A stretch of DNA of 64,000 nucleotides from Guillardia theta CCMP2712 (Eukaryota; Protista; Cryptophyta): NCBI RefSeq assembly GCF_000315625.1, contig NW_005434589.1, positions 137,330-201,329 of the forward strand, given 5' to 3'. Of this stretch, positions 23,776 through 58,008 are shown in pieces (position 1 is the stretch's first letter; each line of letters starts with the position of its first letter). The notes beneath the pieces are model-generated. The model worked only from the letters and a program-made list of their open reading frames with translations. It did no database searches and was not told the origin of the DNA. The translations under genes were made by a program, and so were the position numbers.

Positions 23776-24110
23776 TGGGGAGGGGAGGGGAGGGGAGGGG
23801 AGGTGGAGGGGAGGGGAGGGAGGGAGGGAGGGGAGGGAGGGAGGGAGGGAGGGAGGGAGGGAGGGAGGGAGGGAGGGAGGGAGGGAGGGAGGGAGGGAGG
23901 GAGGGAGGGAGGGAGGGAGGGAGGGAGGGAGGGAGGGANNNNNNNNNNNNNNNNNNNNNNNNNNNNNNNNNNNNNNNNNNNNNNNNNNNNNNNNNNNNNN
24001 NNNNNNNNNNNNNNNNNNNNNNNNNNNNNNNNNNNNNNGGGAGGGAGGGAAGCAGGGAGGGAAGCAGGGAGGGAAGCAGGGAGGGAGGGGGCAGGGGAAG
24101 CAGGGAAGGA
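23776..24110. repeat. (GGGA)n microsatellite flanking a 100-N assembly gap (23939-24038)
   Basis: Long perfect GGGA run, then Ns, then gggaagcagggag units. Confidence 0.97.
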
Positions 24111-24200
24111 GCGTGTGTGCGAACTGCACAGTGGGATCTGATAGAGCATTCAACATGTTTATTCCTTCACTTGTCTTAGCTTCTCGCTCTTTCTTCATCT

Positions 24201-27200
24201 TCACTGGTAGGCTGGGCAGCTGTCGGCAAACATGGCGATCACGCACAGTCGGCCGTCCCCGTGCACCTGAGAGAAGTTGGCGACTAGCGGGGACGAGGAG
24301 ATCCTCACGATCCTCCGCGCGTTCATCGCCACCGCCTGATGCAGGCTGCCTCCCATCATCCGCACATACGACACCAGCTCCTCCTCTGTCCTCAGGCTTC
24401 CCACCGCCAGCCTTACCCCACCTGCAGCACGTTGGCCTGCACCAGCCGCCGCTCCGTCCTCCTCAAGCACCCGACGCCTTCCCCGCACTCCCACACCGAC
24501 CCGCGTCCTCCCCACGCCTGCGCAGCCACCTGGGCTGCTCCTCGCACGGAGAGGAGGTCCGGGTTGATGGCGAAGAGAGCCTGCCAGTTGGTCCCGTAGA
24601 GCCGCGCGACGTCCTGCAGCGTCTCCCCATCCATGACCCAGTGCTCGCAGAAGAGGACGCGGACGACGAGCCTGCGCTCGTCTCTCGTCACTCCGTCGAC
24701 CTTGAGCTCCAGCACCAGCGTCTCCTTCCCTTCCACCATCGGCACCCACGTCACGTTGACCTCGGAGGAGTTGCCAGGGCCCGGGAGCATGGGAGACTTG
24801 CCCAAGGGCTCGAAGGAGGGGGGCGAGGAGAGCAGGGAGGGCACGAGCTCGACGGAGGACCCCTGCGTCAGAGCGAAGCGAAGGAGGAGGGAGAGCTTCT
24901 CCCCTGCCTTGACCACAAGCACGTCCCCCCACTCGGGCGTGGGCGAGAGAAAGTGATTGACAGGCGGCCGATGCCCCACGGCGACGGTTGAGAGGGCTGG
25001 GCAGACGCACACAGCCTTCTCCTTGCCCGCGATGACTGCGCCCGCATCGTCGTAGAGCTGGAGGATCGCATCCAACCTGCATCCTTCTGCCCAGCTGTCG
25101 CTCACAGCGTCCCATACCACACAAACCACCCCGCTCCTGCTGGGATCCTGCTGGAGCTGGCTTGGGACGGAGAAGACAAGGTCGACCGTCACCCCCAAGG
25201 CGTTGACGCGATCGGCGAGGGAGGCGTCGGGCCAGGAGGAGACGGCGAGGCTGACGGCGCGGGAGAGGAGGAGAAAGTCTCCGGTGTAGGAGGGCCTGGA
25301 CTCCAAGAGGCTGACGGCGACCGATCGGCCTGCCGCTATCTGAAGGACGGGGTCCGAGACAGCAGCGGGAGCGAGGGAGAGGGTCACCGGTTGGTCGGGC
25401 ATGGAAAGATCCAGCGGGCCTGCTAGAAGCGCGTCCACACTGACAACCTGCTGCTGCATGGCGACCCGCGAGAGGAGGAGGCGATCGAAGCCTGAGGTGA
25501 GGGCGAACTGCATGGCGAAGGAGGCGATGAAGTCCGCAGCCAACATCTCGTTGGTCCACCACTTGCGCGCGAGGGAGGAGGCGCTAGAGGGGTCGAGGCT
25601 GAGCGAGGAGACGCTGACGGCGATGTGATTCGCCAAGACCAGCAGCTGCTTCAGCTGCGTCACGCTCATCTCCTGCACGCCCAGCTGTTTCATCGTGTAC
25701 AAGAGCGACTCGAAGGACTGGACGCAAAGTGTAACGTCGCTGGGGTCGAGCTGGACTGGAGGCTGAGTCAGCAGCGTCAGGACTTGAAGGGTGTGTAGGA
25801 TCGAGTCTTGCGAGGGCTGCTGGGCCTGATAGAGTTGCTGCATGACGGGGAAGAGGAGGGAAAAGAGCTCCTGGCGCAGCGTCAAGTTTTGACTGCCCAA
25901 GTTCGACTGCACAGCCAAAACTCCAGCCCACAACATGTCGGATCTCCCGGTCTCTTCAACTCTCGCCTTGAGTGCGAGCAAGTTCTCGTGGCCGATGGAT
26001 CGCGATGGGACTTGAAAGGAGGGCAGGACGACTCGAGTTGTCGCCCCTGCCTCATCCACCACGTTGACGGTCACGTTGAGCATCCCGCTGGGAAGAATGA
26101 TTTCCTGCTCGCTCCTCTTCACTCCCAGGGAGAAGTACCGCCCGCTCGTCACTTCCAGCTCGTACGAGTAGCTCAGCCCTGCCGCCAGTCCTCCCTCGAA
26201 CCCTTCGCATCGCAGAGCAGCGTTGAACGGCAGACTCTCTGCCTGGAGGAGGACAAGCCGACAAGACCCGCCAGGAGGCTGGGGGACGACCTTGAGCTTG
26301 CACCAGCTAGCGGGATGAGCGTGAGGTTGGGATACGGCGATGACGCTGCTTCCTTCCACCTTGCCCAGCTCGACCCCAGCAACCGCCAGCGCTGCGCCCT
26401 GACGCTCGAGTGAGTTCGTGGAGGGGTAGGGGAAGGTGTCATTGAACGTCCAGGAAATCAGCTGGAGGGCAGCTGGGAACGAGCTGGAGGCGTTGGCGAG
26501 GAGGTCGATGCCGCCCTGTACCTCCTCGAAGCAATCGACCTCGCTGAACTTCTGGAAGATTCGGATGGTCGACAAAGTCACGGCGCTGCCTCCCACCACG
26601 AGGTCTGAAGTCGCTACGGCGAACTCCATGGACGACGAGACGATGACGCGGAAGGAGTAGACCTTGCCTGCCTCCAAAGTCGCTGCATCGACACTCATGC
26701 TAACGCCATCGGTCAGCATGAGCATGCTCCCGTCCGAGAGCCTGCAAGGATCTGCACCAGTCAAGCACTGCCAGCTGTACCCGAGAGCTCCGGCCGAGTT
26801 GGAGTGCAAGACAACCGCCTCCAAGACGACTTGTTCAGTCGGCGAGACCATCCGGTTGCCGCCCTGCAACTTCACCAACATGGGCTCCAGTCTCGTGGGA
26901 GCATGCGCGTCGATCTCGATGACCGCAGAGGGGTCAATCTTGGGTGTCAACCTCACTCTGACTCCGTTGGTCGCGCTAGTTCGCAGCCGGTAGGCTGTCT
27001 CTCCGCTGATCAGCAAGGGCGTCTGATCGCTCAGCTCGTACCACTCGTACTGCATGGTGGCGTTGGGCGCCGACATGCCTGACACATCCAACGTCAGCCA
27101 CAGACAAGCACGCGGGCCGCAAGTCTTACCTAGCGATACCTCCAGGCACGCCGAATGTCTCGAGTCTGCGATGAGCTCCAGCGGTTGACTAGACGGCTGA

Positions 27201-30200
27201 TACCCGATGACCTGCAGGTAGGCGGCGGGGATGGCAAATCGCTTGCGATGCAGGCGATGCTGGAACGAGAGGACTTGACCGCCGAGCAGAGTGACGCGAC
27301 ACATGACGACGAAGTCGTTGACGTCGAGAGGAAACGCCTCTGGTCCCACTCGGATCTTGAGAGAGGTCTGCTCCACCAGCACTCCTGCAACCTCCTGCAA
27401 CCCAGTGGTGAAGAGCCTCCACTCGACCGCGAGCGGCCTTCTCATGCTCTCCAAGTCTATCGCCAGTTCCACGTCATCGCACGGCCCGAACATCGAGGGG
27501 CCGTAGAGGTGACCCAACTTGCTGGGTCTCGAGGTCACAAAGTCATCGATGACTGTGAACCCGAGGTGAACTGGCAGGTCGCGCGCGTGCTGGTTGGTCG
27601 GGGAGACGGCGGCGTCAAGCATACCAATGTAACCTTGTTTGAGAGTCGTTCCCGAACCCAACGCGACGACGAGCTCGACGTCGGAGCTGAAGTAGCAAGA
27701 AGCGTCGTAGCCGAAGGCTGTCACTGTATCGCCTGAGAACAAGCGGCTGCAGCCAAACATCGTCTTGTCCCCGACGTTGGCCGTTCCCATCACCACCGAG
27801 CCGATCCCTTGGAGGTCAATGGGCTGGTTCATGGTGACTAGCAGCATCCTCCCGTCGGGAGTCAGGCGGGCTCGACGGACTTGGAGGCTGTGGATGTAGG
27901 TGTACTCGAAGCTGAGCGAGTTCTCAACCTCCTGACGGAAAGACACTGAGACCTCAACCACCTCCCGTCCCTCCAGCTGCGGCGCCGAGGGAGGAGCGAC
28001 CAGCACGAAGCTTGTCATCCCGCTGTCTGTGGTGATGTTGCCGATCACTGCCGGCTCCTTCCCTGCGAACACAACTTGCACATCGCTCACTTCCCGCGGT
28101 GCGACAAGTCCGAGCACGCTCACTAGCACCTTGTTGCCTCCCACAGCCGAGCCCTCTCCCCCGATCACCTGCACGACCCTCTGTCGAGGCGAGTCAACGC
28201 GCATCCTGGTCGCTGCCATGAAGTTGCCCCGTCGTACGACTAGGTCATACTGTCCGAACGTGATCGGAGGCAGGAGGAAGGTAACCTCAGAAGCAAACTC
28301 GTCGTCGTAACTCACACTGTGCAGCTTGCCGAAGTACGGGCCGACGGTCAGCTCGAAGTTGCTCAGCACGTCCGAGTTCGCTGAAGTGCCACCGAAGTTG
28401 GCAAGGACCAACTTGAGCATGTTCTCAGCTCCTTCATTGAGCGTGGCAGGAGTGACTGATTCAACCCTCGCCGTGTCCCACACCTTCTCCACCGCCGCGG
28501 TCAGCACAACACCAGGGAAGATGCTGCGCTGAGCTAGAGGGACGACAGAGAGGGGGAGACTGGCGGCACCAGAAGAGGCAAGAGGAAGGAGAGCAGCGAC
28601 AGCTGTCTCCGTCTCGTCAGTTGAGATCAGCCTGTAGCTGTTGACGCCTCCTAAGCTGACGCCCAAACTCTGGAAGGAAGAAACCATCGGGAAGTTAAGC
28701 AGCAAGACTTCAACTTGGCTGCCTCCGTGAGCTGAGGCCGTGGAGGGAGTGAGGAGCCTCATCTGGACACATCAAGTCAGTCAAGTCAAAGCCATCGCGC
28801 TCACAGTTACCTCAGGGGCTGCGATGTAGGTGAAGCTCGCACTCGCCACAGTCCCCAGCAACAAGTTGCGGACTTGCAGGGTCACTCGACCAGGAAGTTT
28901 CGCTGCTGGCACTGTGATATTGACAACCAGGTCGAAGCCAGACTGGACGAAAGAACCTGCGACGATCGTCGCCTCCTGCCCTCCAACGTTCACCTTGATG
29001 TGATCGGAGTTGGCAGCGAAGAAGTTCAAGATCGTAAGCTCGACATTGCAACCTCCAGTCACGCTGCACTCCGGTTGACGCACGGCAACAGCAGGAGTGT
29101 AGAACTGGTGCTGGTAGCTGGCAAAGTGCTCGGTGTTGTAGCTCTGGAAGATCAGAACAGTCGTGCTCATCGGCATCCATACTGACGGAGTCACGAACTC
29201 GATCACGGTTCGTAGAGGAGCTTCTCCAGCCCCCCTCTGCTCGTCACTCCACGAGATGTTCTTGACGGTCCCACTGAACGGCCCGAAGGCGATCTGAACC
29301 TGATTCAAGAAGTCCTCGCCCGCCTCCGCTGCTGTCACCAGCTGCGGGAATCTCTGCAGAGCGATCTCGACCACGTCCCCTCCAGCTATCGACGAGCTCG
29401 TCGTGCTGATCGATTCGATGTGGGTCAGGTTAGTCTGCGTGTAGCTCCAGTCAATGGCGCCATCAAGCACCTGCAACAGGGTGAAACGAGCAGGGCCAGG
29501 GGAGGCCCGAGCAGGAATGGTGAAAGTCATGGAGCAGATTCGGTTGTATGAGACTCCGTTGCAGACGACGTTCTGCGCTGGGGTCGAGAGGTAATCACTG
29601 CTGTTGACCGCACCGCTCAAGTTGGTCAAGGCCAACACGAACTGAGAAGAGCTGGAGCTTCGGATGCGAACAAACACCTGAGACGTGCGATTGAGAGGCC
29701 CGATAGCGGGGTAGTAGGAGAGAAGCTTCGAGTCCATAGCGTCCACCTTGAGGGTGACATTGAGGGTGAGAGCCTGGCTCGATCGAGCTAGTGCCAGAGA
29801 CAACTTGTCACCGCTAGCGGGACACGCCAGAGATTCGAAGGAGAGGACAGTTGAGGTCCAGTCAGAGACGACAACGCTCCCTGCCGTTGATACTCCCGCG
29901 GCACTGACCAACCTGACCGTCTCTTGTTGCAGGATGGGAGACCACCCTTGGTAGGAGACCGTCAGGTTGAAAGTTCCACCAATGACGCAACTCTGAGGAG
30001 AGAAAGAAGCGATGGCAGGGCTGACGGCCACAGGTCGATACAGGAAGTCAAACTGAACGTCGGAGATTTGGGGGCTTAGGAACTTCACAAGCGCCCGGCA
30101 GAGCCCCTCCGTCGCTCGTTCTGGGTTGACCACGACAACCGACAGGCTCTGCTCTACAGGGTCTGCCATCATCTCCACCACCCTTGCGGCCCTAGAGCCG

Positions 30201-33200
30201 AAAACAACCAAGACATCATGGAGCGGCAGAGTGACGTTGGAGATGCGGAGCTCGATCAGCGTTCCTCCCGTTAACGGGCCTTCACTGACGCTCACCCTGT
30301 TGAGGACAGGAGCTTGCTTTGCACGGAGATCAAAACATCTTGCGGCATCGCAGGACTGAGGTGCAAGAACCTGTGAAGACATGTCACCACAAACAGCGGG
30401 CGACATGCGAAAACTCACCGGAGCCAACAAGACATTCTGAGCGCAGAACCAGGTGTAGTCGCAAGTTTGCTGCAGAGAGTAGAGGAAAGTAACATACGGT
30501 TGGTTGGTGTCGGTGCTTGAGATTCGGATGGGAAGCGGTCCCATCGTCATCATGGGAGGGACGTAGAAGGCAACTGTAGTGACGGAGGAGGCGTGGATAA
30601 CCTCCTGCACTTGGGCGTTGGCGCCTCCAGCACCCACATAGATCGACTTCATGTCGTTGACTTGGAAGCCTCCGACCTGCGCTATCACGAGCGAGCCGTC
30701 CAGGGGCCCGCTCATCCGGTTGAGGTCCAGGAGGGTCGGAGTGCTGAGGTCGTAGAAGGAGACGTCGACCTCGACGTCACGACTGGCCGCGCGGATGGTG
30801 ATCTTGGAGCTCGACGACGTGGCGGAGTAAACCTGCATCACCACTCGAACAACGGCACTCACGTTGTAGATCTGAGTCCTGACTAACTCGAAGGACTCGA
30901 TGCTGGCCCTGACATCAGACTTGACGTAGAGGGCAGGAGAGACCGGGCCAGAGATATCCTTGTAGTTCTGATCGAAGGACATGCTGGGGAAGAGAGGGTA
31001 GTCCTGAATGATCACCTCCAACTTCGATGGCAGACCCAGAGGCAGCGAGCGAGGCCAGACGTTGAGGACCTGAGGAACGTTCCCTTTGCCTAAGGCAACC
31101 TTGAAGCCGACGGAGAAGTCACGATTGAGAGTTGACAGCACGACTCCGTTGATCTCACTGAGACTGTCGAGTTGAGTTCCGATGGGTTTGATCGCAAGCA
31201 CCAGCCAAGAGTGATCAGCAGACACAATGTCAAACTCTTGATCCTGCAACCAACGAGATTCAATGGCGACCTGAAGCTCAAGTTTGCTCTTCACCGCCGG
31301 CATGCCAGTCAATGAGAGCTGGAACTCAACCCTGCCATCTGCGAAGAAAACTTGCTGACCCGACGCGTGCAGACGAGGGTCGTTGTACTGATAACTGAAA
31401 GAGATCGAGGAGCCAGACACAATGTCGGTGATCTCCACCATCGCTTGACAGGCCTGCTCGCAACTGGTGGGAGGAACGACGAAGGAGAACTCGGTCTCGA
31501 ACTGACTGGAGGACCTCAAGTTGAACACAGCCGCTGGTTTGCCTCCAACAGAAACGAAAACTTGCGACATCGACGTCAGGGGGAAGTTCTTGGCCAGGAC
31601 CCTGACGGGGTTTCCGCCGAGGGCAGGGCCAGAGGAAGGCTGGGCGAGGACAAGCTGCGCCCCCCCGACCACTGCGAGGCGGAACGAGGAGACCTGCTGG
31701 TTGATGGCGCCCTTGAACAGGTAAACGCTCCCAGCCCATGAGCCCTTGGGCAGAGGCTGCTGCAAGGAGCAGACCAGCAGGGCCGAGTCAACGTGAGACA
31801 CGATAAGATCCAGAGGAGTGCAGGAGACGCCGCTGACGTCGACGTCAAAGTCCGACAGTGTCGCGTTAAGAGGAACTTGTTGGAGCTCGAGATTGAGCGT
31901 CTTCTGCTCGTCAGCCTGCACTTGCGGGGGATCAACTTTTACCAGCTGGAACGACTTGGTGACCATGATGTTCACATAACCCGCAGCAAGGAGGCTGGGG
32001 CTAGCGGAGCCTTGGCAGATGCCATAGAAGCTCACAGCTTGCTGGCCAGTCGGCATGGGAGGAACAAGAACAGTTAGAGTGATGGAGTTGGCCGTCTTGT
32101 CAAGAGTCCGTTGGACGTCACTGACCTCCGCAACTCTCTGCCCAACAAATGCTGTGAAGTCACAACCAGAGAAGCTGGGGTCGAGGAGGGCAAACGTAGC
32201 CTGCAGGTACCAGTTCCCGGCTGATGGCCCGGTGCTGGGGTTGAGCTCGGCTTCACTGACAGTGTACGAGTCCATGACTGTGAGCATGGAGCTGAACTCT
32301 CGGCCTGTGCTCGTGACCGTGATAGCGGCAGGTCCCTTCATGAGGACAGGGGCGACTAAGCGAATCAGAGTCTCTGCCTTGGACACCATCACTGACTGGA
32401 ACTGCACAAGCGAGTTGTCGAGAGAAACAGCCAAGACCGTAGAGGGGTCCACACCCTCCAGCAGGACGGAGACGATATCTCCTCCAAGGTTAGAGATGTT
32501 CTGAGGGAAGACAGCAAGCAGCCTCGGAACCGGGGAGTAGAACTCTACATCCGCTTGCACTTGACAGCGCTGGGGGAATCCGTTGATGCTGATCTGAAGG
32601 GACACATTAGCGGCGACTTGAGACCAATATTTGGGTGAATCAAATTGCACGATGGAACGAGAGTCTATCTGCTCGAACTTGGCAACGGGGATGGAGACAG
32701 GACCCAGTCGGACGACGAAGTCTAGACTGCTGCTGATCGACTGAGTCGTGTGGAGCTCTACGGTAACTTTAGTGCCTCCGTCCATGGAGATGGAGGATGG
32801 GGAGACCCGGGTGATGGCAGCGCACTGAGGATCGAAGATCTCAATGGAGAAGCTGAGAGTCTGGTTGATCATGATCTGCAGCTCAACAGTTCCTGACCGA
32901 GACGCGATGGAAACGTCAGGGAGGACGAGTTGCATTGCCATGGAATTGGCTCCAGCTATCAAAGATCCAGGGGAGATGGGCACTTGGAAGGTCTGGCTGT
33001 TAACCAGGACCTGGGCAACGATTCCAGTAGCAGATTGGGAGCCGATCACGTTGTCAATCTCTACCTGAAGCTTGCCACCTGTGCTCGCGATCACGCTGGG
33101 GGTGACCTGACGAATCATTGGGGAGTGAACTGGATCATCGATGTTGATGGGCAGCACCAGATCTATCAGCTGATTGAGGGAACTGCGAAGGACGAGGACC

Positions 33201-36200
33201 GCCTGTCTCGCAGCCCCCGTGTCGAACACACTCGTGACAATCGTCGTTGCCGTGCTGTCCTGAGTCAAAGCTGACACGCCGACAGCTTGTCCATCGACCA
33301 AGACCTCAAGGCGGTCCAGCGACATGGCTGGTGCGTTGCTGACCTTGAGCGAGAGGGCAACCATCTCATCCTTGAACAGCTGGGAGGGGCTCGTGACCTG
33401 CACGACGGGCTTCACGCTGGCAGGGAAGTGAGTGAGGAAGCTGGTGGTGAGACTGCCAGCGATCCAGAGGCTGAGGTTCTTGTAGCCAGACAAGCCCAAG
33501 GCAGAGGGGCTGCGAACGAGGAAGTCGCAGTGTGAGGGTGTCCAGGAGACTCGAAGGATTGGAAGTCGCTTGCTCGACTCGAAACGGATCTCAACAACCT
33601 CGTTGGAGAGAATCTGCCGGAGATTCTCTACCCTGACCACCATCTCGCCCTCGACAGGGGGTGTAACCTTGACCTGCGTCATGCGAACGGCTCCCTGAGC
33701 AGCCTTGAGCTGGTTTGGCACGTAGAAGAAACATGAGTCAGAGTCCGAACGGAGCAGAGCGACTCCTCCCTTGGCGGAGGTCGGGTACCTCAAGCTCACT
33801 GCTGTGAAACCATCCGTTTGGTTGACACGATCCACCACAGCCTGATGCCCGCAGTCCGAGCTCGCTAACCCTCCGCAAGTGGCATCGTTGAAGCAGGAGA
33901 GGGCGCAGGTTGTACAGACATCGTCTGCTGCACACCATCCCTGGTTGAGTCCTCCTACCGCGTACGACGCGCATTTGCCGAACATGCCGCTGAAGTTGGG
34001 AGTGTCAGAGCACGAGTCAAGCGAAATGCCGAAAGTGACTTGCAGGTTCGAAGTCGATGAAAGGCTCTTGGGGATGGGGTTAGAGCACTTCGAGCACGAG
34101 GGGAAACTGAGTTGGAGGTAGAAGTTGGAGCCAGGAACAGCAACCGCAGGCGCGAGAGTGACGTCACATTTCTTTCCTGGCAGCATCACAAAGGCCTCGT
34201 CGTTCCTGAGAGTGACCCCCCCAGCGAGCGCCATCGAGACTCCGTAGACTCCGTGGGCAACGACGTCAGGCATCGATGCGAAGATCGAGATGACGTCCAG
34301 TCGGAAACGAATTGCATGCACCCCTACCATCACCAGCTGAGCTTCCTTGCCACTGAACACGAAATTCTGAGAGCGGTTGTTCGAAATGTTCATCTGAACG
34401 ATCGCCACCATCGGAATGGTTTTGTATGTTGTGCTCAGTTCGAAGAAGAGAACATCCTGACTGTCTTGATACAAAACAGCAGGGCCACCGGAGGATGGGA
34501 GGGAATGGTTGAGGGTTTCAGCTTCAGGAGAGAAAGGAAGAAAGGAAGAAATCTTCAAGGGGTCCGTGAGAACATCGATGTACCCGCTTGCAACCACAGA
34601 GCCACCCTGCCCGATGACATTGAGGGCCTTTGACTGCGAGGTCACTGCTGACATGGCAGGTACTCGACAGTTGATCGACGTCCTTGCCGTGATCGACTGA
34701 TTGAGAGTACAATCGAGAAGCTCGTTGTCCAAGGAAACCTGCAGGGCAGCTCGACTGTTACTTGCCAGCACGAGGGTCACGTTTGTTGACTCGTGCACGT
34801 AGACCATTGTGGGTCGGACACTCAGCAAGCTGTATCCCGTGCTGGGAGCGACGGAGAGCGCGCAGGAGAGGTTCAAGGATGGCAAGTTTACTTGAATCTG
34901 CAGGACAGACGAGGAGCAGACGACGGGGAGTTTGAACTGCATGAAGTGCACTCTACCCTGAGGGGTGTCAGCAGTCTCTGGAGACAACAAGAAGGGACTG
35001 AACGACGATGAGCTGCCATCGATGATCGTAACTTGAATGTTTGTGAGTCCTTGCAGACCTGAGACTCCGAGAGTCACGTTATCGCCACATTCAGCGCCCT
35101 GCCACTTCTGCGAAGTTTGGTTGTACGTGATGCCATTTCCAAGTACAGATCGGATCTGAGGAGGCTCGCAAGTATCCCTGGGCATCAAGAACTTCACCTT
35201 GCTCTGACCGTTGTGAAACAATTCAGCAATTCCCTGCCCTCCCAGTTGCGTCTGCCTGTTAGGCAGTTGGAGGCTGAGGATAGAAATAATCGGTTTTCCG
35301 TTCACAGCGTTTGAGCTCTGACGTGTAACGGAATTGATCGTTGCGTCTGCGCCATCCAAGGAGAGTCGAAACTTGCTGACGTCACTGTCAAGCTCAAAGG
35401 CAAAGTGTCGGAGGATGATTTTCATGGCACTGCCACTCGAGCATGGAATCGACGTAGGTACTGTGTCCACCACCACGGGCGTCAAGTGGTCGGAGATATT
35501 GACGATGCTGGTGGGTTGGCTGTAGCCGTTGTCAGCCATCGCGACAACACGGAAGTAGTACATGACTCCACTTGTAAGCCCAAGCTTGGAGTATCGGAAG
35601 GTGGGAGTCGTCTTATCAATCATTGGCGTGTACTCGACGATCGGAGCTTGGAAGTCAGAAGTCAAGGAGGTTTGAACCTCAAAGCTCAGCTGATTGTTTG
35701 CGATGCTGCTGGAGTCGATCGCCCATGACAAGTTGACAGCGAGGCCACTGGACGAGCCCGACCACAAGAGCGCCTGGAGGTTGTGAGGAGCAACAGCGTT
35801 CCCCATGAACTGCGAAAGCAGAGGGTCTGATGCTGGGCCGATGCCAGCCAGGTTCTTGGCGACGACTCGGAACTCGTACAGGCTGTTGGGCTGCAACGAG
35901 CTGGTCGACAACCTATAGCTTTCTCGCAGGGGCACCACGTCATAGTCCGTGTCGTTGACCCTAACGATGTAGGAGGCGAGAGGGTAAGAATTGTCGCCCG
36001 TGCCCGTATTCACCGGCCACTTCCATGAGAACACATAGTATCCCTGCTGTAGCACGAAACTGAAGTCAAGCGGGCTTGACGGCAAATCTGCTGCGCGGCA
36101 GGTTCTATACCCAGAGAAGGCACCAGCACCAACAAGGTTGTAAGCTTTCACACGGAAGAAGTACACTCGTCCTGCTTGAAAAGCCAACGAGATGTTCTCG

Positions 36201-45200: not shown

Positions 45201-48200
45201 TGCAGATGATCAGCAAAGACTGAGAAGGGCGAGATTCCTTGAACGCGCAAGAGCTCCACATTGGATGGAGTCACAGATGCCAATATCTGGCAGTTGTTAA
45301 GGCAGTAGGAAGTCCCATCCCTCTTGATCTGCGTGACGGGGACGACGTCGCTCAAGAAAGTGAAGGATGACGGGAATGACAATCTGACATATCCGTTGAC
45401 GAGCTTGCGAACCTGGAAACTGAACTTCTGATCCTCATCCATCCCAGCCACGGGGCTGGAAGAGGATGCCGAGGTTGTCTGAATGACAGGAGGGAGAATC
45501 GAATTAGTGAGCACCTGAAGATCTTGATCGATAACGATGTCTCCTGCTGAGAGAGTGCGCAACCTTGGCATCGAGTACGATCCTTGCTGCTGAGGGTTCT
45601 GGATGTCCGTCAAGAACAACCGGACTTGAGTGGTCGCAGCTACGGACAAATTGAGATCCACGAGGGAAAGGAAGATAGAAGAAATGTTGATTCTTGTGAT
45701 GTTGATGTTTCCGTTGAGATACCTCGTGGTAAGCGAGTCCGGGAACACTCCGGAAGGGATACGAACGTTGCTGAGGCCAAAGCTTGACGGCACAGTGATC
45801 TCGATCTTACCGTCCAGAGGGATGGGATTGTAGTTGTCAAAGCGAACATACAAGGCTGTGACTAGGCCTGAGGCGAGACTTAATGGCACGACTTGAGTCG
45901 ACTGCAAGAAGTTAGGCTGGAGGAATCGAGTCTCAGCATAGGAAGTCAACCGATCGACGTTCACGCCATTTGAATCTCTTGTGTACACGTCAAAGAGACC
46001 CGTGTTGCCTGAGATCTGCTGAGTTCGAACGGCAGAAACGTTGAAAGCAATGCGAACGCCGTCGTACCCAGGGACGTACAAGCGATCGGTGGTGGCGGCA
46101 AGATCTTGCAGACCCGGCAAGAACGACAAGCTTGAGATGGAGTATAGAGTGGGCTGCATGCTATTTAGAAGCACTATCTGTCGGCCCGAGTCAGCCAAGG
46201 AAACAGCTACATCTTGCTTCAAGCCGATGGGGCAGTTCACTCCATTCTGGCACGGGTCTCCACAGATCTCATTTGCCAGCAGAGAAGAACAATATCTCAC
46301 ACCATTGAGCGCGAGGAATCCCGGAGCAAGCCTGACCACGACACTTCCACCAGCTGGGAACGGATTGCGGGTTGTCATGTCAACAGAGAGCAACACTTGA
46401 TCTCCAGTAAGGGAGTATGTGAAGGAAACTGTGCCCGACTTCATCCCTCCTTCAGTTATTTGATAGTCCTTGTTCGCACGGAAGTTGGATAGGATGGTAG
46501 AGTAGCAGGACTGCAGTGATGCGATGCTGCAAGCGCTGTTGGTTGTCATCAGTAAGAAGGCTCCCGTCAGCTGCCGTCCTGCCTTTGGATTCAGAACATT
46601 GTAAAGGGTGAAGGAGAGCTGTTGACCCAAGGAAATGTTTCCAAAGCTCCTCAACTCAAGGCCCACGTAGAGGCTCACGTCGTTGATCGCCTTCTTGTCA
46701 AAGACTGAACACGTCGATGTCAAACCGCTGTTGACGGTAAACGAGCAGCTGATCTGCGGTATGACAGCGAAGCCCGGTGGAAGAATGACCATGATCCTGT
46801 CCGTGAATGTGAAGGAACGCAACAAAGTCAAAGTAAAGGTGAGATTGGACAAAGTAGCCGATTCCGTGTTAGCGAAGTTGATGCTCACGTCAACGTACTT
46901 GGCAGTCAGGGATGGCCCGAGGATATCAGAGCTTTCAATGGACTTGTTGTTGACATCGAAGAGAGTCAGAGTGAAACTTCCTGGGACGATGCTTTGATTG
47001 TTGTAGTTAGTAGATGATTCTCGTCTGCAAGACAGTCAGCACTCTGCAACATTCAAGATGTAGGGTAAGGATACCTGTTGATGAAGGGTCCAAGCGAAAA
47101 GCTGACGAAAACATCTTTGCTGGTGATCGTAGTGCTCCGGCGGATGATGATGGAGCTTCCATTCACAGAGACGACAGATAGAATTCCGCGGAGATTGGAG
47201 AGACTTCTGACTTGAATGGCTTCCTGGGTCGCCGTTCCCTTTGAAAGGAACTGATAGGCCGAGGGCACTTTGAGCTCGAAGTAGTCAGAAGCAAAGATGC
47301 CTGACTCCGCATTCCATTGGAACCGAAGCTCTGAGAACTCCCCGACAACTGAGTTGTTTGTGGTGAGCTGCATGCTGCTGTACTTTCCTGCCGTTATGGA
47401 GAAACCAGGCACACTTTGGTTTAACATCTGATCTACCCCGCCAGTGTCTTGCACAACTACAGTCAAGTTGGTCACAGTCGTTGGCCTGACGGGATTCTTC
47501 AGGGATCCAATCAGCTTCAGGCACATCGTGTTGCCGCGCGCGACGTTTGACAGAAGTCGCAAGCGCAAGACGTTACAATCGGATACACAGCCAGAAGCAA
47601 CCACCTCAAGCTGTACAGATGTCTGCACGCTCACATTATTGAGGAGCCAGCTGGGTCGGTTTGCAAGGAGCTCATCGTTGGGGGGCACAACAGCCTGTGT
47701 GATCGTTTGAGCTCCGTCAAACCCACTAGGGAAGTAGACGATGATGACTTGTCCAGCAAAAATCGGGTTCACAGCAGCAAGGTACAAGTAGAAACTACCA
47801 CGAGCGTGGGCAGTGTAGTCTTGCAAGCGAACGAAGGCGTTGGTGCTCACTTTGGTGAGGTTGGTAGGGGTGATGTCCGACGCTCTCTCCAGCAGGTTGC
47901 CATTCTTGTCGTAGGAGCGAAGGACGTAGCTCTGCTTCGCAACCCCCGCGAGGGGTCCATTGCGAACTCCACTGAAGGTGATGTTGACAAGATTGTAGGG
48001 AGGGAAGCTGTTGGCGAAGCCTCTCACGCGGAGAGTTCGATTTCCCACCCGCTCAATGGTGGTCGAAGTTCCGACATTGTCAATAGCGTACCTGACATTG
48101 GTCTCTGTGATATCTTTACCAACGTCAAGAATTTGCGGGTCAGGGATAGAGTTGTAGGCGACGGTCGTCGTCTGATAACCGGCATTGACACATTGTTGAA

Positions 48201-51200
48201 ATGGATTGTTGGGCACTCCTCCAGTGTATGTAAAAAATGTTGTTGGAAGAATAGTTGTCATATCCCTCGAAAACACCTCTTGGACCGGACAAACTGTTTT
48301 CATTATGAAGATGGTTCTTGAAGCATAGTTGTTGGAACTTGCAGTTAACGAAATTCTGAAATTTCCAGGGGGCACCCTCGTCGCATTTCCACTTATTGCA
48401 GCTCCGGCAAGCGAAGCTCCTGAAATATCAAACCCGTCCGGAAAGTCTACCTCGATGTAGCCATCCGAAGGTACGCCCGTTCGGCTGTGATACAGAACGT
48501 TGAAGGAGGTGCTTGCACTGACAAACGTCGACTCAGGGTAGATCCATACGTTGCTCTTTGGCAGGTCAACCGTTGAGAAGCCAGTGGCCCACGTGGAGAG
48601 TCCAGACGCCTGGAGGACGACACCTGAAGCTGGGCTGATTGATCCATCGCTCGACGAGTAACCAACAGTTCCGTTGTAAATTTGAACCTCGAGGGTCATG
48701 GAGATCGGGGTGACAGGCATCCGTATAAGAGAGATGTTGATGCTGACTCTTACACCTGCTGGGATTGTGTCGGGTGTGATCGGATTGATCAGAATGGTGG
48801 GGCTAGAAGGGTAACCACATTTCACAGGGAACGTGACATTCAAGGAGGCTGAAGTAGTATTGGTTTCAGTCAGGCTCTTGCTCGCGAATGCGCCTTGTGT
48901 TATTGGATAGTCGATTTGAGGGAAGTTGACCCTTGATTGCCGACAAAATGCTACTGAGTTTGCAGGAAACTTCAAGATGATTTTGGATGTCTTCTTAACT
49001 TCAACAGGCGTGATAAACGAGATCTCAGTATTGCTCCAGTATCCGAGAGTCGGAGTTGTCAGGCTAAACGTCATCAGGTTTGTTATCGGTCCTGCTCCAC
49101 TGAGAGTAACCGACGCGTTTGACGACTGGCAAACAACCCTCGAGAGCTCTGAGCTCCACGACAGCGACTGTCCCCAACTGGAAAGCTGGTATGGTGCTAA
49201 GTTGTTGCTGGACAGGACGCGAAACTTGAAGTTGGTCAACTGGAAGGGAGGTTGAACGCGAGGGGTTTGGAAGGGACCCAGGACAAGTTTGATGGAGCAG
49301 GGGCAGGACAGGAACGATACACCAGCCACTCTTCCTACGACGATGGAGCCTCCAGGACTTGCAAACAGGCTGACGGAGACTTGTGAAGGTGCCCTCGTCA
49401 CTTGATTCACTAGGATGGAAAACAGTCTGATCGTTCCAGATGGCTGCAGGTCGCTGGGAACACTGACAGAGAAATTGAGGCCGTCCGAGTTGTTGTAGTT
49501 CTGGTCAAAGGATACAGTGAGGTTGACGACATCTGCCGTCGACAAGGGCAAGACGGTGAAGGCAGCGTTGATGGCGCAGCCTTCCGGATTTATGTTGAAG
49601 ACTGGGTATGATGGGGCATCGTACATGGTCAGGATCGAACCACTGATAAGCTTCCTAATCGCAAGACTTCTGATGAGATTGTAGCCTCCTCCTGCAGTGG
49701 GATTCTTGAGTCCGGAGATCGTCAGCATGACATTTGTGTTGACGTCGCTCGACTTGTCCACTGGATTGACCATGAAGGTAAGACGAGTCGAACCAGTGAC
49801 AGCAGTGACCATTGGCGTCCCACTCATGTTGTAAGTGTAAGACAAGTTCAAGTCAAGCATGGGGCTTGTCACGGTCATAGTCTGATCGATGTCAAGCGTG
49901 ATGTTAAAAGGGAAATTCACTTTTCCAGGGATAGTGAAGCTTACATACATAGTCGTGCTTTGACCGACGTAGCTATTCGACAAGTATGCCAGCAAGCCAA
50001 CCAAAGATCCCTTTCCTGTGGCCTGCAGTGCAATCAGATTGTTCCGGTCAATGACTGAATGCTGCGTAGAAGACCAAACCTGCACATCAATGTTCCCAGG
50101 CAAGATGTTAAACTCATCTGGCGAAATGATGTCGAAAACGGTCAATGACAGAGTTTGATTGGCAGCTATGGGAGTCGGCACCTCTCTGTAGACTATGACA
50201 GTCGATTGATTGGAGTAGTTGGTGCCGTTCAAATGACAGCCCAATGGAATAACGAAGGATCCAGGCTCCATCTCGGTCACGTTCGGAGCCTCACACACAT
50301 CCGGCACTACGTACGTCTGGTTTGACATCCTCACGCTGCGCGTCGCTACAAGGGAGTCTGCAATGTATTGACCGCCGATCGTTTGGACCTGACATGTCGC
50401 ACAGCCTTGCACTGAGTACGAAAAGTTTTCTTGGGGCCCTGGGCAGTACTGCAACGTTGACGAGCTGCACTGATAGGGGGTCAAGTACTGAGTCTGGTTG
50501 TCAATCGTCGAGTCAAGTGAGCCAGTGAAGATGTATCCCTCAGTGCTGGGAACGATTCTTGACTTGTCCGTGAGAAGCACCTTAGAAGGCAACCGGATGA
50601 TGAAGGTTGCTTGCTCGGGTACGATGTTGGCAGTCTTGAACTTGATCTGAAGGGAGACCTTGGCTCCTCCAGCAGGAAGAGCTGCTGGGAAGAGTTCGGG
50701 TGAAGAAAGGGTACCAGGAACAATCGTGGACTTCCATTCTCCGCTGGCAAACGAGTGATAGCATGAGCCTGACTTGACATAGACTTCGAAGAAGAATGTT
50801 CCTTTCATCGGCGACTGATTGACTACATCCGTGTATCCTAGAGCATACGAAGGATTCTTGTAGCTCTTTATGTTGATCACGTTGTCAGAGCGCAAGGCGG
50901 TCAATCTGAAGTAGATCCGTCCAGCTCCCACTGATGGTGAACTGACTATCGATGACTCCACAAAACAAGCCGAAGGGGCTATGCTGTAACCAGCACTCAT
51001 GATGGTCGCTGACCATGCTTCGGCTACAGCCGTGTCAACCTGGAAGTCAGGCGGGAAGTACATCACCAGGTAGTTGTCGGACTGGAACAACGGCAGGTCA
51101 ACCATGGAAGAGTAAGTATACTTCAGATACAGGTCCGCAACTTCCCCTGCTACATCCGTGGTCACCGAGACCGAGAAGTTGGACGTGAGGTCATAATTCC

Positions 51201-54200
51201 TGGTAACGACTCGTGTTGTTTGACCATTGAGGCAGTAAGCAGGATAAAAAGTCTGATGGTGAATCAGGGCTCCCGATGGATCCACGGTCTCTAACATGTA
51301 CATGCCATGCGCACCAGATATCTTCTTGTTCCGGAAACTGTGTAGGCCGTCAGTAGCCTTTCCTATGTCAAAGAAGGTGATCGGGGTGTCCGGGGGAACG
51401 GAGGTACCAAGCACGGTGGACAGAACCACCTTACCATTACTGACGTTGGCATTAAACGAGAAGTTCTGGAAGGTTCCATTGCAAGAATCTCGATCGGACA
51501 CCCGGAGAGCGGACAAGGTAGATTGAAGAGCCACGCTGCTCGACAAATTGGTGCAGCGGAAGATGGCGAGCGAAGCGTTCACTGTGCTCGTGACAAGTTG
51601 AAGATCTGCCGATGAGAAAGTGAACCTGAGGGTGGACCCAGAAACAATCTCATTGGTTGTCTTGAGGCTCAGGTAAGTGAAGTGAGTTCGAGCTCCAGGA
51701 TACTCGCTGCTCAATGGGCTTCCCGGTTGCTTAAGCGGGCAGAGCAAGGGAGCTGGATCGGTTTGAGTACTCCAGGAGGTGTCAAGCCATTCGAACTCTG
51801 ATGCTGTCACATTGAAGTCCATCATTGACCCGGTCTCAATGGCATACCCTTCGGATGTCACCGTGGCCAACTCGAAGTTATATCTCAACGTCATGTCGAG
51901 GGTGGCGTTCGGACCTTCCTCCTGAGGGAATCCCTTGTTCGAGAAATTGTACAACCTCAGACGAACGATTGATCCTGCTGCGATGTCCAACCCACTTCCA
52001 CTCCTTTGCAGCGTCAAGTTGAAGTACGCGTTGACTGTCCGGTTGAGGACTACAGACGTAAGATCCTTCACCACAGTAAGATTCTCATCGCATCCCTCCA
52101 CGCACTCAGCAACGCTCGTACATCCCCACAGGGGCCCTCCGTTGCAAACAGGAGTGACAGCATCGTACACGGATGGAAAACTGAAGGCAAACTGGCCGTC
52201 CTTGGGGATCAGTTGATGATTTCTAATCACGATATCCGCATATCTGTGGTTATGTACAGTACTCAGAGTAGCTCCGAACCGCGCTGCGGTGTCGAGGGGG
52301 AAGATTGAACTGTTCAAGGAGTTGACAGATGCCAACAATCCAGAAGCGAACGCCGTCTTGATGAGTCTGCCGTCCGACCTTCGAGAAGCTGTGATCTGAA
52401 TGGAATCACTCCATCCTGACAGCAGGGGAGACCTCAGTGAAGACCCTTGTAGTGTGAAGCGAATTGAAGCAAGGCTGTTCACAGGCAGCTGCAAGTTGAC
52501 TTGGTTGGCAGTGCTTGATGTAAGAGTGACACTGGGAGAGTCCTTGACAGTGATCGATTCAACGCCCAAGAAACCTCTCGAGCCAGAAGGGAAACTCAAT
52601 TTCAAGTTCTGGCCCGGAACGTTTGGGTCGAGGAAGACTTCAAAGCTGAGATCTGCGTTTTCTCCGACAGCAGCCTCCCTGCCTCCGTAGGTGAAGTTGA
52701 GGACTGCCGAGTCCAAGGAAGGCAAGATGGTGCCGAGACTGTTTGCACTCTGCCTCTGCATTACATGGGTGGTAGTCGAATAACAGATCTCGACGGTAAA
52801 ATCGAAACTGCCTCCCACCCTCGCGCTCTTATATCCCCCAACAGAGAAGGCAACCCTGGAGTGCGCTGGGATGGAAGTGACTGAATTCAGCTCAAAAGTG
52901 CAATTAGTGTCATTCCGAAGAGGAGGAGCCTGTGTGTTGTTGGTACAGTTGATCTGGAACTGGTCTTCTGAAGGAGAGAGTTTCAAGACAGTAACTGTTC
53001 CCAATTTAAAGTTTATTTGGAAGCTTGACCCTGATTCAAACAAAACCGACCCTTGGGTTTCGGCTTCGCCCGACAGGATTGAACCAGCTGGCGTAATCCA
53101 GAGCAACTTTGATCCTTCCACTCCTCTTAAAGCGTCATTGTTGGCTAGCACAGTCGTGTTGACAGATTGAATGGCAACAGAACTCAGTTTCGTTCCAAAC
53201 ATCTCAAGAGATGATACCCTGACACTATCCTGCAAGTTCCATTGCGAGAAGAGGGTGAAGGCAAAAGTAAAGGTAGACTGTTCATCAGTATGCACAGCAG
53301 TCTGACCGGATGAAACCTGCTGCAAGGGTACAGCTTTGATACTCAAACCGAAGACAGCCGCTGTCTGCTGACCTTGATCAGTCTCAATTGACACGTTGAC
53401 GGGAAGAGGCGAGCTTTCCTCGTAAGTTGGATTTTGTACGCCAGAGATCAAGATTCGCACATCAGCACGTGCGGCAGTTGAGTTGACAGTGCCGATGTCA
53501 ACAGTCAAGGAAGTTTGGGTGACGTTTGATAGTACAGCAGTGTGAACTTTGATCGAGTCCACGCGCAGCTCGATTATCCTTGGATCTATCCACTCGTAGA
53601 TTTCAGGAAGCTGCAGAAACACTTTGGTGCTGTTGGTATTTACATTGAAGGGTGAAATGAAAGTGAGAGAGAAATTGCTCTGGGAGTATGTCAGTTTGGG
53701 GCTGACAGTGCTCCATGAGCCTGTTTGGAAGTCTGCAGGCAGTTGGAGTCCTCCAACAGGTGTGAAAGCAGTGCACAATGATCCGTACACTCTCAGTGAG
53801 TTACTCAAAGTTTGCAAGTATGCTCTTGGAGGGTACTGGGGGTTGACAACGGGATTGCGAATTCCAGTCAAAGTGAAGGTGATTGACCCGCCACTCGCAA
53901 TAGGTGCAAGAGGCTTGAACAAAAGTCCTGGCAACTTTGAACCAGTATCCCAACCATCTTGATTGTTACATTGTACAGTCTGAACTGATGAATCTGAAAC
54001 CGTCCCAAAGTGATAACCAACATATTCCAGCACTCCCATAGTCACGCTGAAGTCGGATCCAATTGAGTACTTTGCAGCGTCTCTGAAGCTGTCACAATCT
54101 TCGTCATGACAAGAGATGAATGGAGATAAGAAAAGCCCGATCCTATCCTCCGTGCTAAGATCGTTACACATCGTCATCGTGACAGTGACAAGTGTTTGCG

Positions 54201-57200
54201 AGCCCAACCCCGGTGCAGACAGCACGACCTGAGCTGAATTCAGGCAGGGTGACAAATCGTAGACACTGACTGCATCTTGTTCATAGATCTCCAACCCTCG
54301 GTCCGTTGATGCAACATGTTGGACTGTGACACTCTGGATTTGTCCAGCAGTTTTGCGAGTATCCAATGGTGAGATTTGGAAAGTGAGGTACGAATCCTCT
54401 TCAGCAATCTTGCCAATTGCTTCATGTAAGACGGACCATCGTTGCCTCTTGATTTCCAATAAATTTGTTCCTGTCTTGTGAACATCTAGAACAGTGAAAG
54501 GGCAAGTATAGTTCCAAGATGCTCCTGGACAATAATCGATGTAATCATAAGGCTCCTTGCAAGCAAATTCCACCTTTGTGTCGCTCCTTACAATAAGATC
54601 AGGACCGAAATCAATCACAATTCTAGAATCGGGAGGAACCATTGGTTGATTTACTTGCAGCTTGATGGTAACATTCACCTCTTGGTCGGCGATAGGCGCT
54701 TCATTGTTCAAAGCTGTGATGTCCATCTTGATCGACTTGAAATGCGCAGTTGTCAACTGCACACTGAAAATCCCCTTGTCCATCGTGATGTTTGATTGCG
54801 ATGCAAGAGAATCTACAACCCAAGATCCTGAATCTCCAGCTGATCCATTCCTGTTTTGAATTTCAGCCAAGCGAAAGGATACTCTGCCTTGGCAAGTCGT
54901 CATCGATAGTCCTTTTCGTTGTAGCAACACATAGCTCGAGTTGCTATCAATCAGAGCAAGTTCATCATCGACATTCGAATCATCACAGTGTAACTGAGTG
55001 GAGGTTTCAGTAGGTGAAAAATGAAAGTATGGAGGATACATGATCCTGATCATATCATACGGATAAAAAACATTGAAAAGATCAAAATGGATTTGAAAAG
55101 AGGTCATTGCATAGGCGTTGCTGTCATTGAGCTGAATTAATGGATTCCTTAAGAGTGCAGGTTCCAAGAAAAATCCATCATACTGAGAAGCCTCAAGAAA
55201 TTTCGAAGGGCTCAAGAAGGTTCTCAGCACGAAGGTTCCTGTCAACCCACTGACTCTAGGATTGTATGCACGTTCCAATTGAAATTCAATCCTAGACCCC
55301 ACCGACAAAGGCTTGGATGGAACAGTAGCGTTGTCCCAGTAGGAATCGCGGATAACCTCTGAGCAGTTCGCAATAATGCTTGCAGTACACAGTCGAAGAC
55401 ACTGCTGAGCCTCCATGTGCATACAGTTCTTCAGCCTCAGCAAAGGCGGGTGCCAGGTCTCATTCATTACACGATCAACAAGCATCATCTCCAGCGAATT
55501 CCCCAAGACCTGCAACTTGAGACTTCCGCTGATGCCAGTTAGAGCATAGTCGGAATAGGAGTATATCTTTTTGTACTCCAGAGAAAAATTTCCCATGAGC
55601 ATGCGGGAGGTTTCGTTCCAATAAAAACTCACATTGCAAAGGTTCTGACTGCAAAGTCGATCGTCCACCTCTGTAAGATTCTGCTTCCTGATCACGTTGG
55701 CAGACATGAAGTTGAAGCCATTTGGAAAATCAAGTTGAATTCCACCATAAGCTGGAACTTCTTTGTTGCAAACAAAGCTGATCTTCCACGTGGACTCTGC
55801 TCCGCTCACAAGAGGGGTAAGACTCATTTCAATTTGTTGTACCTGCACAGCTTGCAGAACACCATCAAGATACGTTCCAGCTTGAATTGCTGGTAGAGGT
55901 TTAGAATCACCAGTGCGGGTTGTTACATTCAAAATTCTGTCTACAGTATAATAAGGGGAAACAACACCGACAATCACGAGTGAGTACTGGATTCCCTTCA
56001 CCAAAGACACTCCAGTCAGGTCTACTGAAACGAAGGATTGATTGAAGGAGGAAATGCGACTCCCCTCAAGATAAGCGACAGCATTCTGCGAAAATTGAAA
56101 TTCTGGCGTCAAACTGATATCCATAGATGACATAGCTTTTGACAAGGCGATGCTGATCGTAAAGGTCACAGTCAAATTTCCGATCCTATCAGTTGTCTGG
56201 GGAAACGAAGCCTTCAAGCTTTGCAAACCGGAGGGGACAAGATTTTGAGCAGGTTTGCCTGCACCAATGTCCAACATACGGATGCTAGATCCTATCATTT
56301 CCTTCGTCTCAATTGAAATGCTGTTCATGAACTTCCCCGCATAAAGCCGATTACGAAAGCCGCCTACCTCCAAAGAAATCTCACTTGTCGCATCAATTTG
56401 CTGGAGGATACAAACTTCAACAAGGATATACATAGGGTCGGGTTGTAACGATGGGCTGCAATCCTGGAATTGAGAATTGGATGGAATCATTATGCTTAGC
56501 GTAGGCTTCTCATTCACAAGCGTCAAGTCACTAGTGGGAAAGCGCAAACTGATTCTACTCATGTTGTTTGCCAAGAGGTTGTTGATCTGAAATGAGATGG
56601 TCACGCTCACATTTTCCTTTCCAGTCTCATAGGAGCTTAGTCCAATGTTCAAATTCCTAACATAATTTGGTTGCAGTGGAACTGAATTGCTGATGCCGTA
56701 ATCTAATGTAAAGTTGTTTTCATTCCAGCTCTCCACTTGTACAGCACCAGATGAAAATTGTGAAGGAGTAAAAACGTTGGTGATATTCAAAGTGACATCC
56801 TGATTGCGATCAATTGAGTTTTGAATGTTGCGTAGCAAAATGCTTGATTCTGTTGGCAATAGGTATGATGTACCAATGACATCGATTCGAGCATTAGCAC
56901 TTCTGACATCGGTGACCGTTCCGGATATCGTTGATGAGGGACGGATGTTGAAATTAGAGGGAAACCGAACTCGAATGCTACCGCCTTTTGGAATACTTGT
57001 GACAGTCTTAAAAGTCACATTCGCAAAGGTTAGCTCCGAAGAAAGGGGTGAAGCTACCGACATGTTGACTCTTGAGAATTCGTTCGTTGTGAGATTTATA
57101 GCAGTTTTCCCAGTTCTGCTGAACCAGTAATGTGTTGTCTGGTTTAATTGAGGGTCATTGATACGATTGTTGTAGAATTTCATCTTGTAGCTGGGAACTT

Positions 57201-58008
57201 TCGTGGTTCCACGAAGCTCATCGGTTGCATCAAAAATCTGGATTCCAAATTGAACTTTCCTTTCTTGGAGAGCTCCTGGAAGTTCACCAGGAGTATAGAG
57301 AGGGTTGACGATTCCTGATATTGAGAAGCGAATCCTTTGAATCGTTCCCCTCGCAACGGAAGATTGCACCTCAAGGTCTGTGTTGGCATAGCTCGTCATC
57401 TCAAACATGTTGGTGCAAGGAGGGCTGCTACAAGGGTCGGAGGAACCAAACGATGTTCCAACATCTGTCGTATCCGTCACTGCCGGCTCAATCGTCAACG
57501 ACCCCTTAGAAATTGGAGTGTTCTTGAAGAACCCTGCTTGGCTGGTGATACCATCCAGACCCGTCACGCCCTCTCCAAACTTTCCTCCACCTTCTATATT
57601 TACAACCGAGTCGGATATATTGAAAGTACTTGGAAATATCACCCTGATGATGGTGTACTTGAGCTGGGTGTTACTATGAAAGATGGCTGGACTGATGCCA
57701 GCTGCACTGTAGATCGGATACAGATCGATTGACACGCTCGCGCTCACCAGGTTACCGAGGCCCAGCCTCGAAAGGGTGATATTGGCGTCTACAGGCAGGA
57801 CGCAGTCACCGGCAGGACATTGATCGGTATGAGTAAGGTTGTAGTTCATGGTCTGAGCTGAGGTCATAGGCAGGAAGACGGAGGCTGCGGAAAGGATCAA
57901 GATCGAGGAAAGACGTGTCAAAAAGAAACCCTTACCGAGGAAGAGGAGGAGAGCGGAGAAGGGAAGGCCATGGCAGGAGGGTGAGAGAGTTCTAGCAGGA
58001 GGTCTCAT
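24201..58008 (-). CDS. Giant (about 11,100 aa) secreted multidomain protein: beta-sandwich repeats, EGF, IPT/TIG, FN3, EPTP/EAR, REJ, GPS, LysM x2
   Basis: ORFs 47053-58008, 37958-46888, 28781-37957 and 24413-28762 join in frame through GT-AG introns at 47025-47074, 37911-37961 and 28763-28810. Further in-frame introns are likely at 57885-57935, 27079-27129 and 24437-24547. Removing the first intron leaves a clean signal peptide. The final ~70 codons need a 1-nt correction near 24416. Confidence 0.88.

Follow-up and report, generated by a model that had tools for sequence, protein, structure and literature searches.

Four long open reading frames (ORFs) lie end to end on the minus strand of the window, a stretch of 64,000 nucleotides of the Guillardia theta CCMP2712 genome (contig NW_005434589.1, here C85, positions 137,330–201,329). 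They encode 3651, 2976, 3058 and 1449 amino acids and tile window positions 58008–24413, and the locus raises the question of whether they are four genes or one, and what the product would do. Comparison gives good support to one gene encoding one secreted multi-domain polypeptide, as was proposed in an initial annotation made from the DNA alone. With moderate confidence, this polypeptide is read here as a secreted, glycosylated filament of beads-on-a-string type, situated in or on the outer coat of the cell (surface periplast or mucilage) and held there by its LysM end.

Gene structure and conservation

A search of the 87.1-Mb, 669-contig genome assembly found a collinear paralog on contig C234 (4211–37988, 33.8 kb), with 59–76% identity to the window gene along the full length. 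No similarity was found between the window flanks and the paralog contigs.

Each of the three breaks between the ORFs is bridged by a GT-AG intron that restores the frame (J1, J2 and J3, Table 1). These introns had been proposed in the initial annotation, and all three are present at the positions given, with the expected flanking residues and with branch-like motifs. Within the gene, GT-AG segments in the appropriate length range take up about 2% of all positions, so three of three breaks would be bridged by chance with a probability of about 1e-5. Intron J1 falls within a single repeat unit – the end of exon E1 matches positions 1–110 of the repeat hidden Markov model (HMM), and the start of exon E2 matches positions 114–142 – and is spanned by one ORF of the relative L036. 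J2 is spanned by single ORFs in P0031 and in a distant paralog on C77. J3 is spanned by P0003, with the expected 7 residues between the two matches, and is encoded within one small exon in L034. The counterparts of these introns in the C234 paralog have different lengths (49, 47 and 50 nt) and diverged cores. The splicing is thus supported by comparison, through the introns of the paralog and the relatives that cross all three junctions in one frame.

The three-intron model was incomplete, however, as it missed three further introns that are in frame (I0, I3 and I5). By comparison I5 is certain to be an intron: it must be spliced, because the paralog's version breaks the frame. In I3, identity between the window and the paralog drops to 0.45 in the core, versus 0.68–0.78 in the flanks, and the relative L034 has a gap there. 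I0 is a probable intron inside the signal peptide. Both copies have it open and with a length that is a multiple of three, and it is read through in a protein of Hanusia, a cryptophyte, so it may be retained; the paralog and a Hanusia protein begin in the same region as the N-terminus of the window gene. Two Hanusia entries, P0040 and P0041, were rejected as transcript evidence. One of them (P0040) stops at the J1 codon, at the donor, while the other keeps I0 in frame, which gives both the look of unspliced sequence; no contig is on record for either.

The span first assigned to the gene, 24201–58008, does contain the four ORFs, but position 24201 is in a different frame from the fourth, which stops at 24413. 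The cause is a one-base frame break at 24415. An extra C is found behind this position in DNA run X1, though not in run X2 from the same sample, and the paralog has five C at the same place, reads through in frame, and continues into a final 72 residues that are 76% identical to those of the window gene. Because both the paralog and one DNA run carry the extra base, the break is probably a homopolymer error of the assembly rather than a recent mutation. An intron bridging the break was rejected, since there is no good splice pair and a missing base accounts for the break. A 111-nt in-frame intron in the LysM region (~24547–24437) was also rejected, as this stretch is kept as protein in the paralog and in relatives. 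A 100-base assembly gap (23939–24038) lies in a CCCT-type microsatellite directly downstream of the stop codon.

Without correction the four exons total 11,148 amino acids and 1.21 MDa, close to the ~11,100 amino acids and about 1.2 MDa first estimated, but with six introns removed and one base added the gene has seven exons and 11,169 codons, a whole number. Protein lengths are arithmetic on coordinates, and searches were run exon by exon. The paralog model shares the six intron positions and also has a whole number of codons (11,157). The ratio of non-synonymous to synonymous substitution (dN/dS) between the two copies is 0.09–0.24 in every part of the gene, with dS of 1.2–2.1, and this comparison supports purifying selection on the gene. 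The ratio averages over the time since duplication, and a very recent loss would therefore be compatible with it.

Domain architecture

In total the chain has about 70 beta-sandwich domains in tandem, including ~10 FN3 and ~22 IPT domains, and from these the beads-on-a-string extracellular filament suggested earlier is a sound inference. The order is a signal peptide, ~33 unnamed repeats with IPT and EGF domains and a His-rich insert between their blocks, three FN3, EPTP, seven FN3, ~20 IPT, REJ, GAIN, an immunoglobulin (Ig)-like domain, and two LysM. The order initially drawn up by eye was otherwise right, but its GPS belongs to a complete GAIN domain from which the catalytic His is missing, and its LysM ending consists of two LysM-like units preceded by the Ig-like domain. 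Hydropathy agrees with the predicted signal peptide, and the many N-x-S/T sequons that had been noticed number 177, against ~105 expected from composition.

The unnamed repeat is 144 amino acids long and Ig-like, with blocks of ~26 and ~6 copies detected by a local HMM. One unit folded to an all-beta sandwich (pLDDT 91.6). Its best structural match was YcnI/DUF1775 (Z 10.8), followed by pilin (Z ~9 to SpaD) and cohesin-like Ig domains, and in the atlas its best match was an oomycete EGF-containing protein (TM 0.81), with DUF2808 clusters at TM 0.67–0.73. The likeness to YcnI, to DUF2808 (also a weak sequence match) and to Gram-positive pilins is one of fold, as identity to the repeat is only 6–16%. 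Pilin-type isopeptide repeats were rejected, since the repeat consensus has no conserved Lys. A Pfam search of the first exon, which carries the repeats, gave no match; searches of NCBIfam, and of the PDB by sequence with the repeat profile, were blank or weak, and single units matched no family above the cut-off.

The EPTP/EAR region is, from its inferred fold, a probable beta-propeller. A word-index search with exon 3 returned only generic FN3 matches. In the IPT array, the local HMM scored 17 units in exon E3 and another 3 in E4; those same units were its seeds.

The His-rich insert has HxH pairs and a cluster of Cys that are conserved in the paralog and in the distant relative L036, which lacks ~70 residues between two His stretches. 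The insert is possibly a metal-binding segment or oligomer clamp. An iron-clamped trimeric needle has been described in phage tail fibres (PMC12609058). Like the needle of phage T4 gp37-type tail fibres, the insert has HxH pairs both on an outgoing stretch and on the one that returns, the segment separating them being dispensable, and its atlas match to a phage short tail fibre (0.80) is a lead only; with no match in PHROGs or the PDB, and no family match, this is a resemblance and nothing closer.

The REJ-GAIN-LysM ending

The REJ region scores 31.7 bits in Pfam, against a cut-off of 25. For the domains that follow it, the intact C-terminus of the paralog was modelled with 24 relatives (pLDDT 77); the window copy is 62% identical to it. 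Residues 56–363 of the model are a GAIN domain, with a VIA Z of 20.3 to the GAIN domain of CELSR1 (root-mean-square deviation 3.5 over 272 residues) and 17.4 to GPR110, and a Foldseek E of 1e-9 to the GAIN domain of BAI3. Axonemal doublet-microtubule chains (8glv_AE, 9y6s and 9fqr_Hn) also match this region, at Z 10–11, below the true GAIN matches.

Self-cleaving GAIN domains have the consensus His(-2)-Leu/Ile(-1)-Ser/Thr(+1) (PMC13197933). The GPS of the window copy reads C-V-C-P-A-L-S-T, with Ala (codon 24997–24995) in place of the catalytic His, and both this copy (A-L-S) and the paralog (S-L-A) depart from the consensus. It is retained as H-L-T in P0003, P0004, P0006 and P0010, while P0001 and P0002 have H-M-S and the other members have no such motif. 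Because Ala or Ser stands in place of His, the GAIN domains of the window protein and its paralog are probably uncleaved, and the family seems to hold both cleavable and non-cleavable members.

Pfam matches LysM in 20 of the 25 aligned members and GPS in 12; the last exon of the window gene, searched alone, had no LysM match in Pfam at E 0.01. The GETL and NP motifs are preserved in the first LysM domain, and the terminal Cys residues are nearly invariant among the aligned relatives. Searches of exon 4 against the PDB by sequence, of the last exon of the paralog by word index, and of the C-terminus for atlas features were blank or weak.

Table 1. Features of the giant gene and its product, in order of translation (window coordinates)
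Feature	Position	Strand	Evidence
Signal-like N-terminus and start codon, probable intron within	57832..58008	-	Hydrophobic stretch ending SAQ
Intron I0, 51 nt, in-frame, stop-free, probable	57885..57935	-	GT/AG and branch-like motif; paralog counterpart 54 nt, same place
~21–22 repeat copies, ~144 aa each, Ig-like beta-sandwich	47077..57684	-	Local HMM
Intron J1, 50 nt, FINR/RESS	47025..47074	-	GT-AG, branch-like motif; paralog intron 49 nt
Three more full repeats and remainder of J1 unit	45491..47024	-	Local HMM
IPT, EGF-like (Pfam DUF7949), IPT/TIG	44639..45244	-	Pfam, local HMM
His/Cys-rich insert, several HxH pairs	43994..44476	-	His motifs kept in paralog and L036
Second repeat block, 5–6 units of ~144 aa	40874..43597	-	Local HMM; weak Pfam DUF2808
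Three FN3	39638..40657	-	Local HMM
EPTP/EAR repeats, 5 detected	38174..39442	-	Pfam EPTP E 2.5e-12
Intron J2, 51 nt, in-frame stop, ESYV/CNMS	37911..37961	-	GT-AG, branch-like motif; paralog intron 47 nt
Seven FN3	35486..37711	-	Pfam fn3 E 6e-24; titin/PTPR FN3 matches
~20 IPT/TIG-like domains, array crosses I3 and J3	27950..35473	-	Pfam TIG; local HMM
Intron I3, 48 nt, in-frame, stop-free	30371..30418	-	Both copies GT..CAG; paralog counterpart 54 nt
Intron J3, 48 nt, in-frame stops, AAPE/MRLL, at IPT domain start	28763..28810	-	GT-AG, branch-like motif; paralog intron 50 nt
REJ region, upstream border approximate	26030..27860	-	Pfam REJ E 8e-8, best stretch 26800–26030; PKD-like K319L
Intron I5, 51 nt, in-frame, stop-free	27079..27129	-	Paralog's 50-nt intron shifts frame; 18-residue gap in L034
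GAIN domain	24968..25990	-	Model of paralog's intact C-terminus
Ig-like (filamin/I-set-like) domain	24647..24961	-	Z ~8 to Ig domains; Pfam Filamin in 4/25 relatives
LysM domain 1	24545..24645	-	Paralog above Pfam cut-off
Probable assembly error: one-base frame break where + strand has four C	24415..24419	-	Paralog, DNA run X1
Second LysM-like unit, divergent, with two Cys at C-terminus; stop 24203–24201	24201..24419	-	76% identical to paralog, dN/dS 0.09; 41% to L034

The genes upstream appear by eye to be housekeeping neighbours – a ribosomal protein S27a-like exon (61720–62073, plus strand) and a dihydrouridine-synthase-like gene (62224–63595, minus strand). Kelch-like exons were also seen by eye near 59116–59412.

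Homologous proteins

The closest homologues found are from Hanusia phi, a related cryptophyte. Searching 1.84 billion representatives without a profile yielded 21 matches, four of which were traced to metagenome contigs with giant genes (one of 6,513 + 4,748 amino acids) that have FN3, TIG, REJ or LysM in the same order. Two of the relatives, L034 and L037, are interrupted by introns or intron-like gaps. The metagenome contigs L034 and L036–L039 cluster at 39–43 kb, about the size of the gene, probably because assemblies break in the flanking simple repeats. On L036 (23384–28498), the C-terminal part from the end of GAIN to LysM, together with the next small ORFs, is repeated ~4 kb downstream, a local duplication or an assembly artefact.

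Within the G. theta genome, parts of the protein recur in other combinations. Open frames of 6,784 and 5,415 amino acids at C84:139089–159443 and C216:8469–24716 (L026–L028 and L030–L032) consist mostly of the 144-aa repeat, in 42 and 32 copies, and the array on C84 begins with a clear hydrophobic signal. The ending is shared by the distant paralog on C77, and about ten other proteins end in Ig-LysM-LysM-Cys; those inspected mostly have no GAIN match (L044, L046, L049, L050, L051 and L052). On C19 this module lies directly downstream of copies of the 144-aa repeat. The module may be a common surface-attachment tag. Another REJ-like ORF, L007 (C61:313630–317703), is followed by a helical region resembling GAIN subdomain A. 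The size of the window protein is not exceptional within the genome: single open frames of 18,418 (C59, ~94,000–135,000) and 13,956 amino acids (C35, ~113,000), with weak matches to the 144-aa repeat, were also found.

Comparison with known systems

The window protein resembles polycystin-1 and PKD1-like proteins (PKDREJ) in its long Ig-like ectodomain followed by REJ and then GAIN/GPS. Membership of the polycystin-1 family was nevertheless rejected. The 11-helix membrane part, PLAT and channel domain of those proteins are absent; ~260 residues of Ig-LysM-LysM follow the GPS, and then the stop codon. The cleavage-site His is also missing from the window copy. Paralogs and relatives likewise end in Ig-LysM-LysM with no hydrophobic segment. 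Adhesion GPCRs (CELSR1, BAI3, GPR110 and latrophilin) share the GAIN fold, with its helical A and beta B subdomains (Z 14–20), and the Cys/Trp pattern of the GPS, but were rejected as an identity because no seven-transmembrane domain directly follows GAIN. The fusion of the two is holozoan, while non-holozoans have GAIN in other genes (PMC12716839), so a protist GAIN is not in itself new.

The TLP-IPT glycofibril (CryoSeek) is a natural tandem-IPT filament whose best sequence matches are in a cryptophyte, with >200 IPT domains and at least 20,000 residues (10.1101/2025.09.30.679562). The beads-on-a-string IPT array and the cryptophyte matches are points of likeness. Those minimum numbers mean that the window protein, with ~20 IPT in a mixed chain, is not this fibril. 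A literature search whose coverage took in few subscription papers found no publication about these genes or about a GAIN domain with LysM after it.

Proposed function as a filament, and alternatives

In the cryptophyte periplast, the membrane is flanked by protein on either face (PMC12223506). If the window protein is a filament of this coat, the ~11,170-aa chain would be imported into the endoplasmic reticulum and N-glycosylated. Its C-terminal Ig-LysM-LysM-Cys module would bind a polymer of the N-acetylglucosamine (GlcNAc) type and so hold the filament at the surface, and the GAIN domain would join the filament to this anchor. In the relatives with H-L/M-T/S, GAIN would cleave itself, leaving a non-covalent joint that force could release, and the propeller and His-rich insert would be nodes for binding or cross-linking.

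Consistent with secretion, the protein has by hydropathy no membrane helix after the signal, as the initial annotation also saw, and no hydrophobic segment follows GAIN (the best 19-mer in the last 72 amino acids reaches 0.83). Several points weigh against a coat filament. The calls of a signal peptide and of no membrane helix are both based on hydropathy. The second LysM is divergent. None of the indexed RNA runs contains the 3' 6 kb of the gene, and one raw RNA run of 764 million letters has 6 reads on 24110–30100 and no spliced joint. The extended length, roughly 250–300 nm, is an estimate from the general knowledge of typical domain sizes.

It is unlikely that the protein is instead a detached receptor ectodomain – one that would dock, by its REJ-GAIN-LysM end, on a membrane protein separate from it, as in a split polycystin, with the filament as a mechanosensory antenna. 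The Chlamydomonas mastigoneme docks on PKD2. The sequence of REJ then GAIN is the polycystin-1 layout, the canonical GPS is retained in several relatives, and GAIN domains unfold or dissociate at 10–20 pN (PMC13197933), but the neighbouring ORFs that were inspected included no gene for a membrane partner. Beyond the cleavage site the strand enters the Ig-LysM part, so the protein itself has no helix bundle for it to activate, and the same LysM end is found on proteins without GAIN.

LysM domains bind microbial GlcNAc polymers, and the protein could also face outward, as a capture tether or released lectin that binds bacteria, prey or parasites through their peptidoglycan or chitin, with the long body giving reach. 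The GETL and NP motifs of the first LysM fit such binding, and the very low expression in one culture run could mean that the gene is inducible. This is quite unlikely, however, with no anchor at the other end, no catalytic domain found in Pfam or NCBIfam, and a LysM module which, being common to many secreted proteins, looks more like an attachment tag.

A component of the flagellar hairs, or of their terminal filaments, is improbable. Cryptophyte hairs are of tubular and simple types, and biochemical tests have yet to show how they relate to those of heterokonts (PMC5756292); the oomycete protein that best matches the repeat is of a domain class that occurs in hair proteins of heterokonts. 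No mastigoneme structure was among the fold matches listed, however, and a hair subunit made in abundance would be expected to show strong expression in motile cultures, which was not seen in the RNA runs.

That the ORFs are several separate genes, or that this copy is decaying or silent, is very improbable: the RNA run gave no junction reads and one DNA run agrees with the frame break at 24415, but the junctions fall inside domains that are continuous in relatives, the starts of ORFs 2–4 have no strongly hydrophobic stretch, less than 55 nt is left as intergenic room, and purifying selection relative to the paralog argues against silence.

Implications

GAIN has been studied almost solely before membrane helices, in adhesion GPCRs and polycystins. 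A conserved family in which REJ-GAIN precedes a soluble Ig-LysM ending, and in which cleavable and non-cleavable members occur naturally, makes it possible to test directly what GAIN does when there is no receptor. Tentatively, this would be a family of ~11,000-residue secreted filaments in which a membrane-free GAIN, cleavable in some members and locked in others, is a self-cleaving, force-releasable link to a small LysM glycan anchor, with a metal-clamped His needle possibly bundling the filaments.

The locus also illustrates how short introns, some of them free of stops, and one assembly error can hide a 34-kb gene. If the proposed reading is true, GAIN would be a mechanical fuse without a receptor, and a protein of the cryptophyte surface coat would have a name – a candidate for the little-characterised fibrils of that outer coat.

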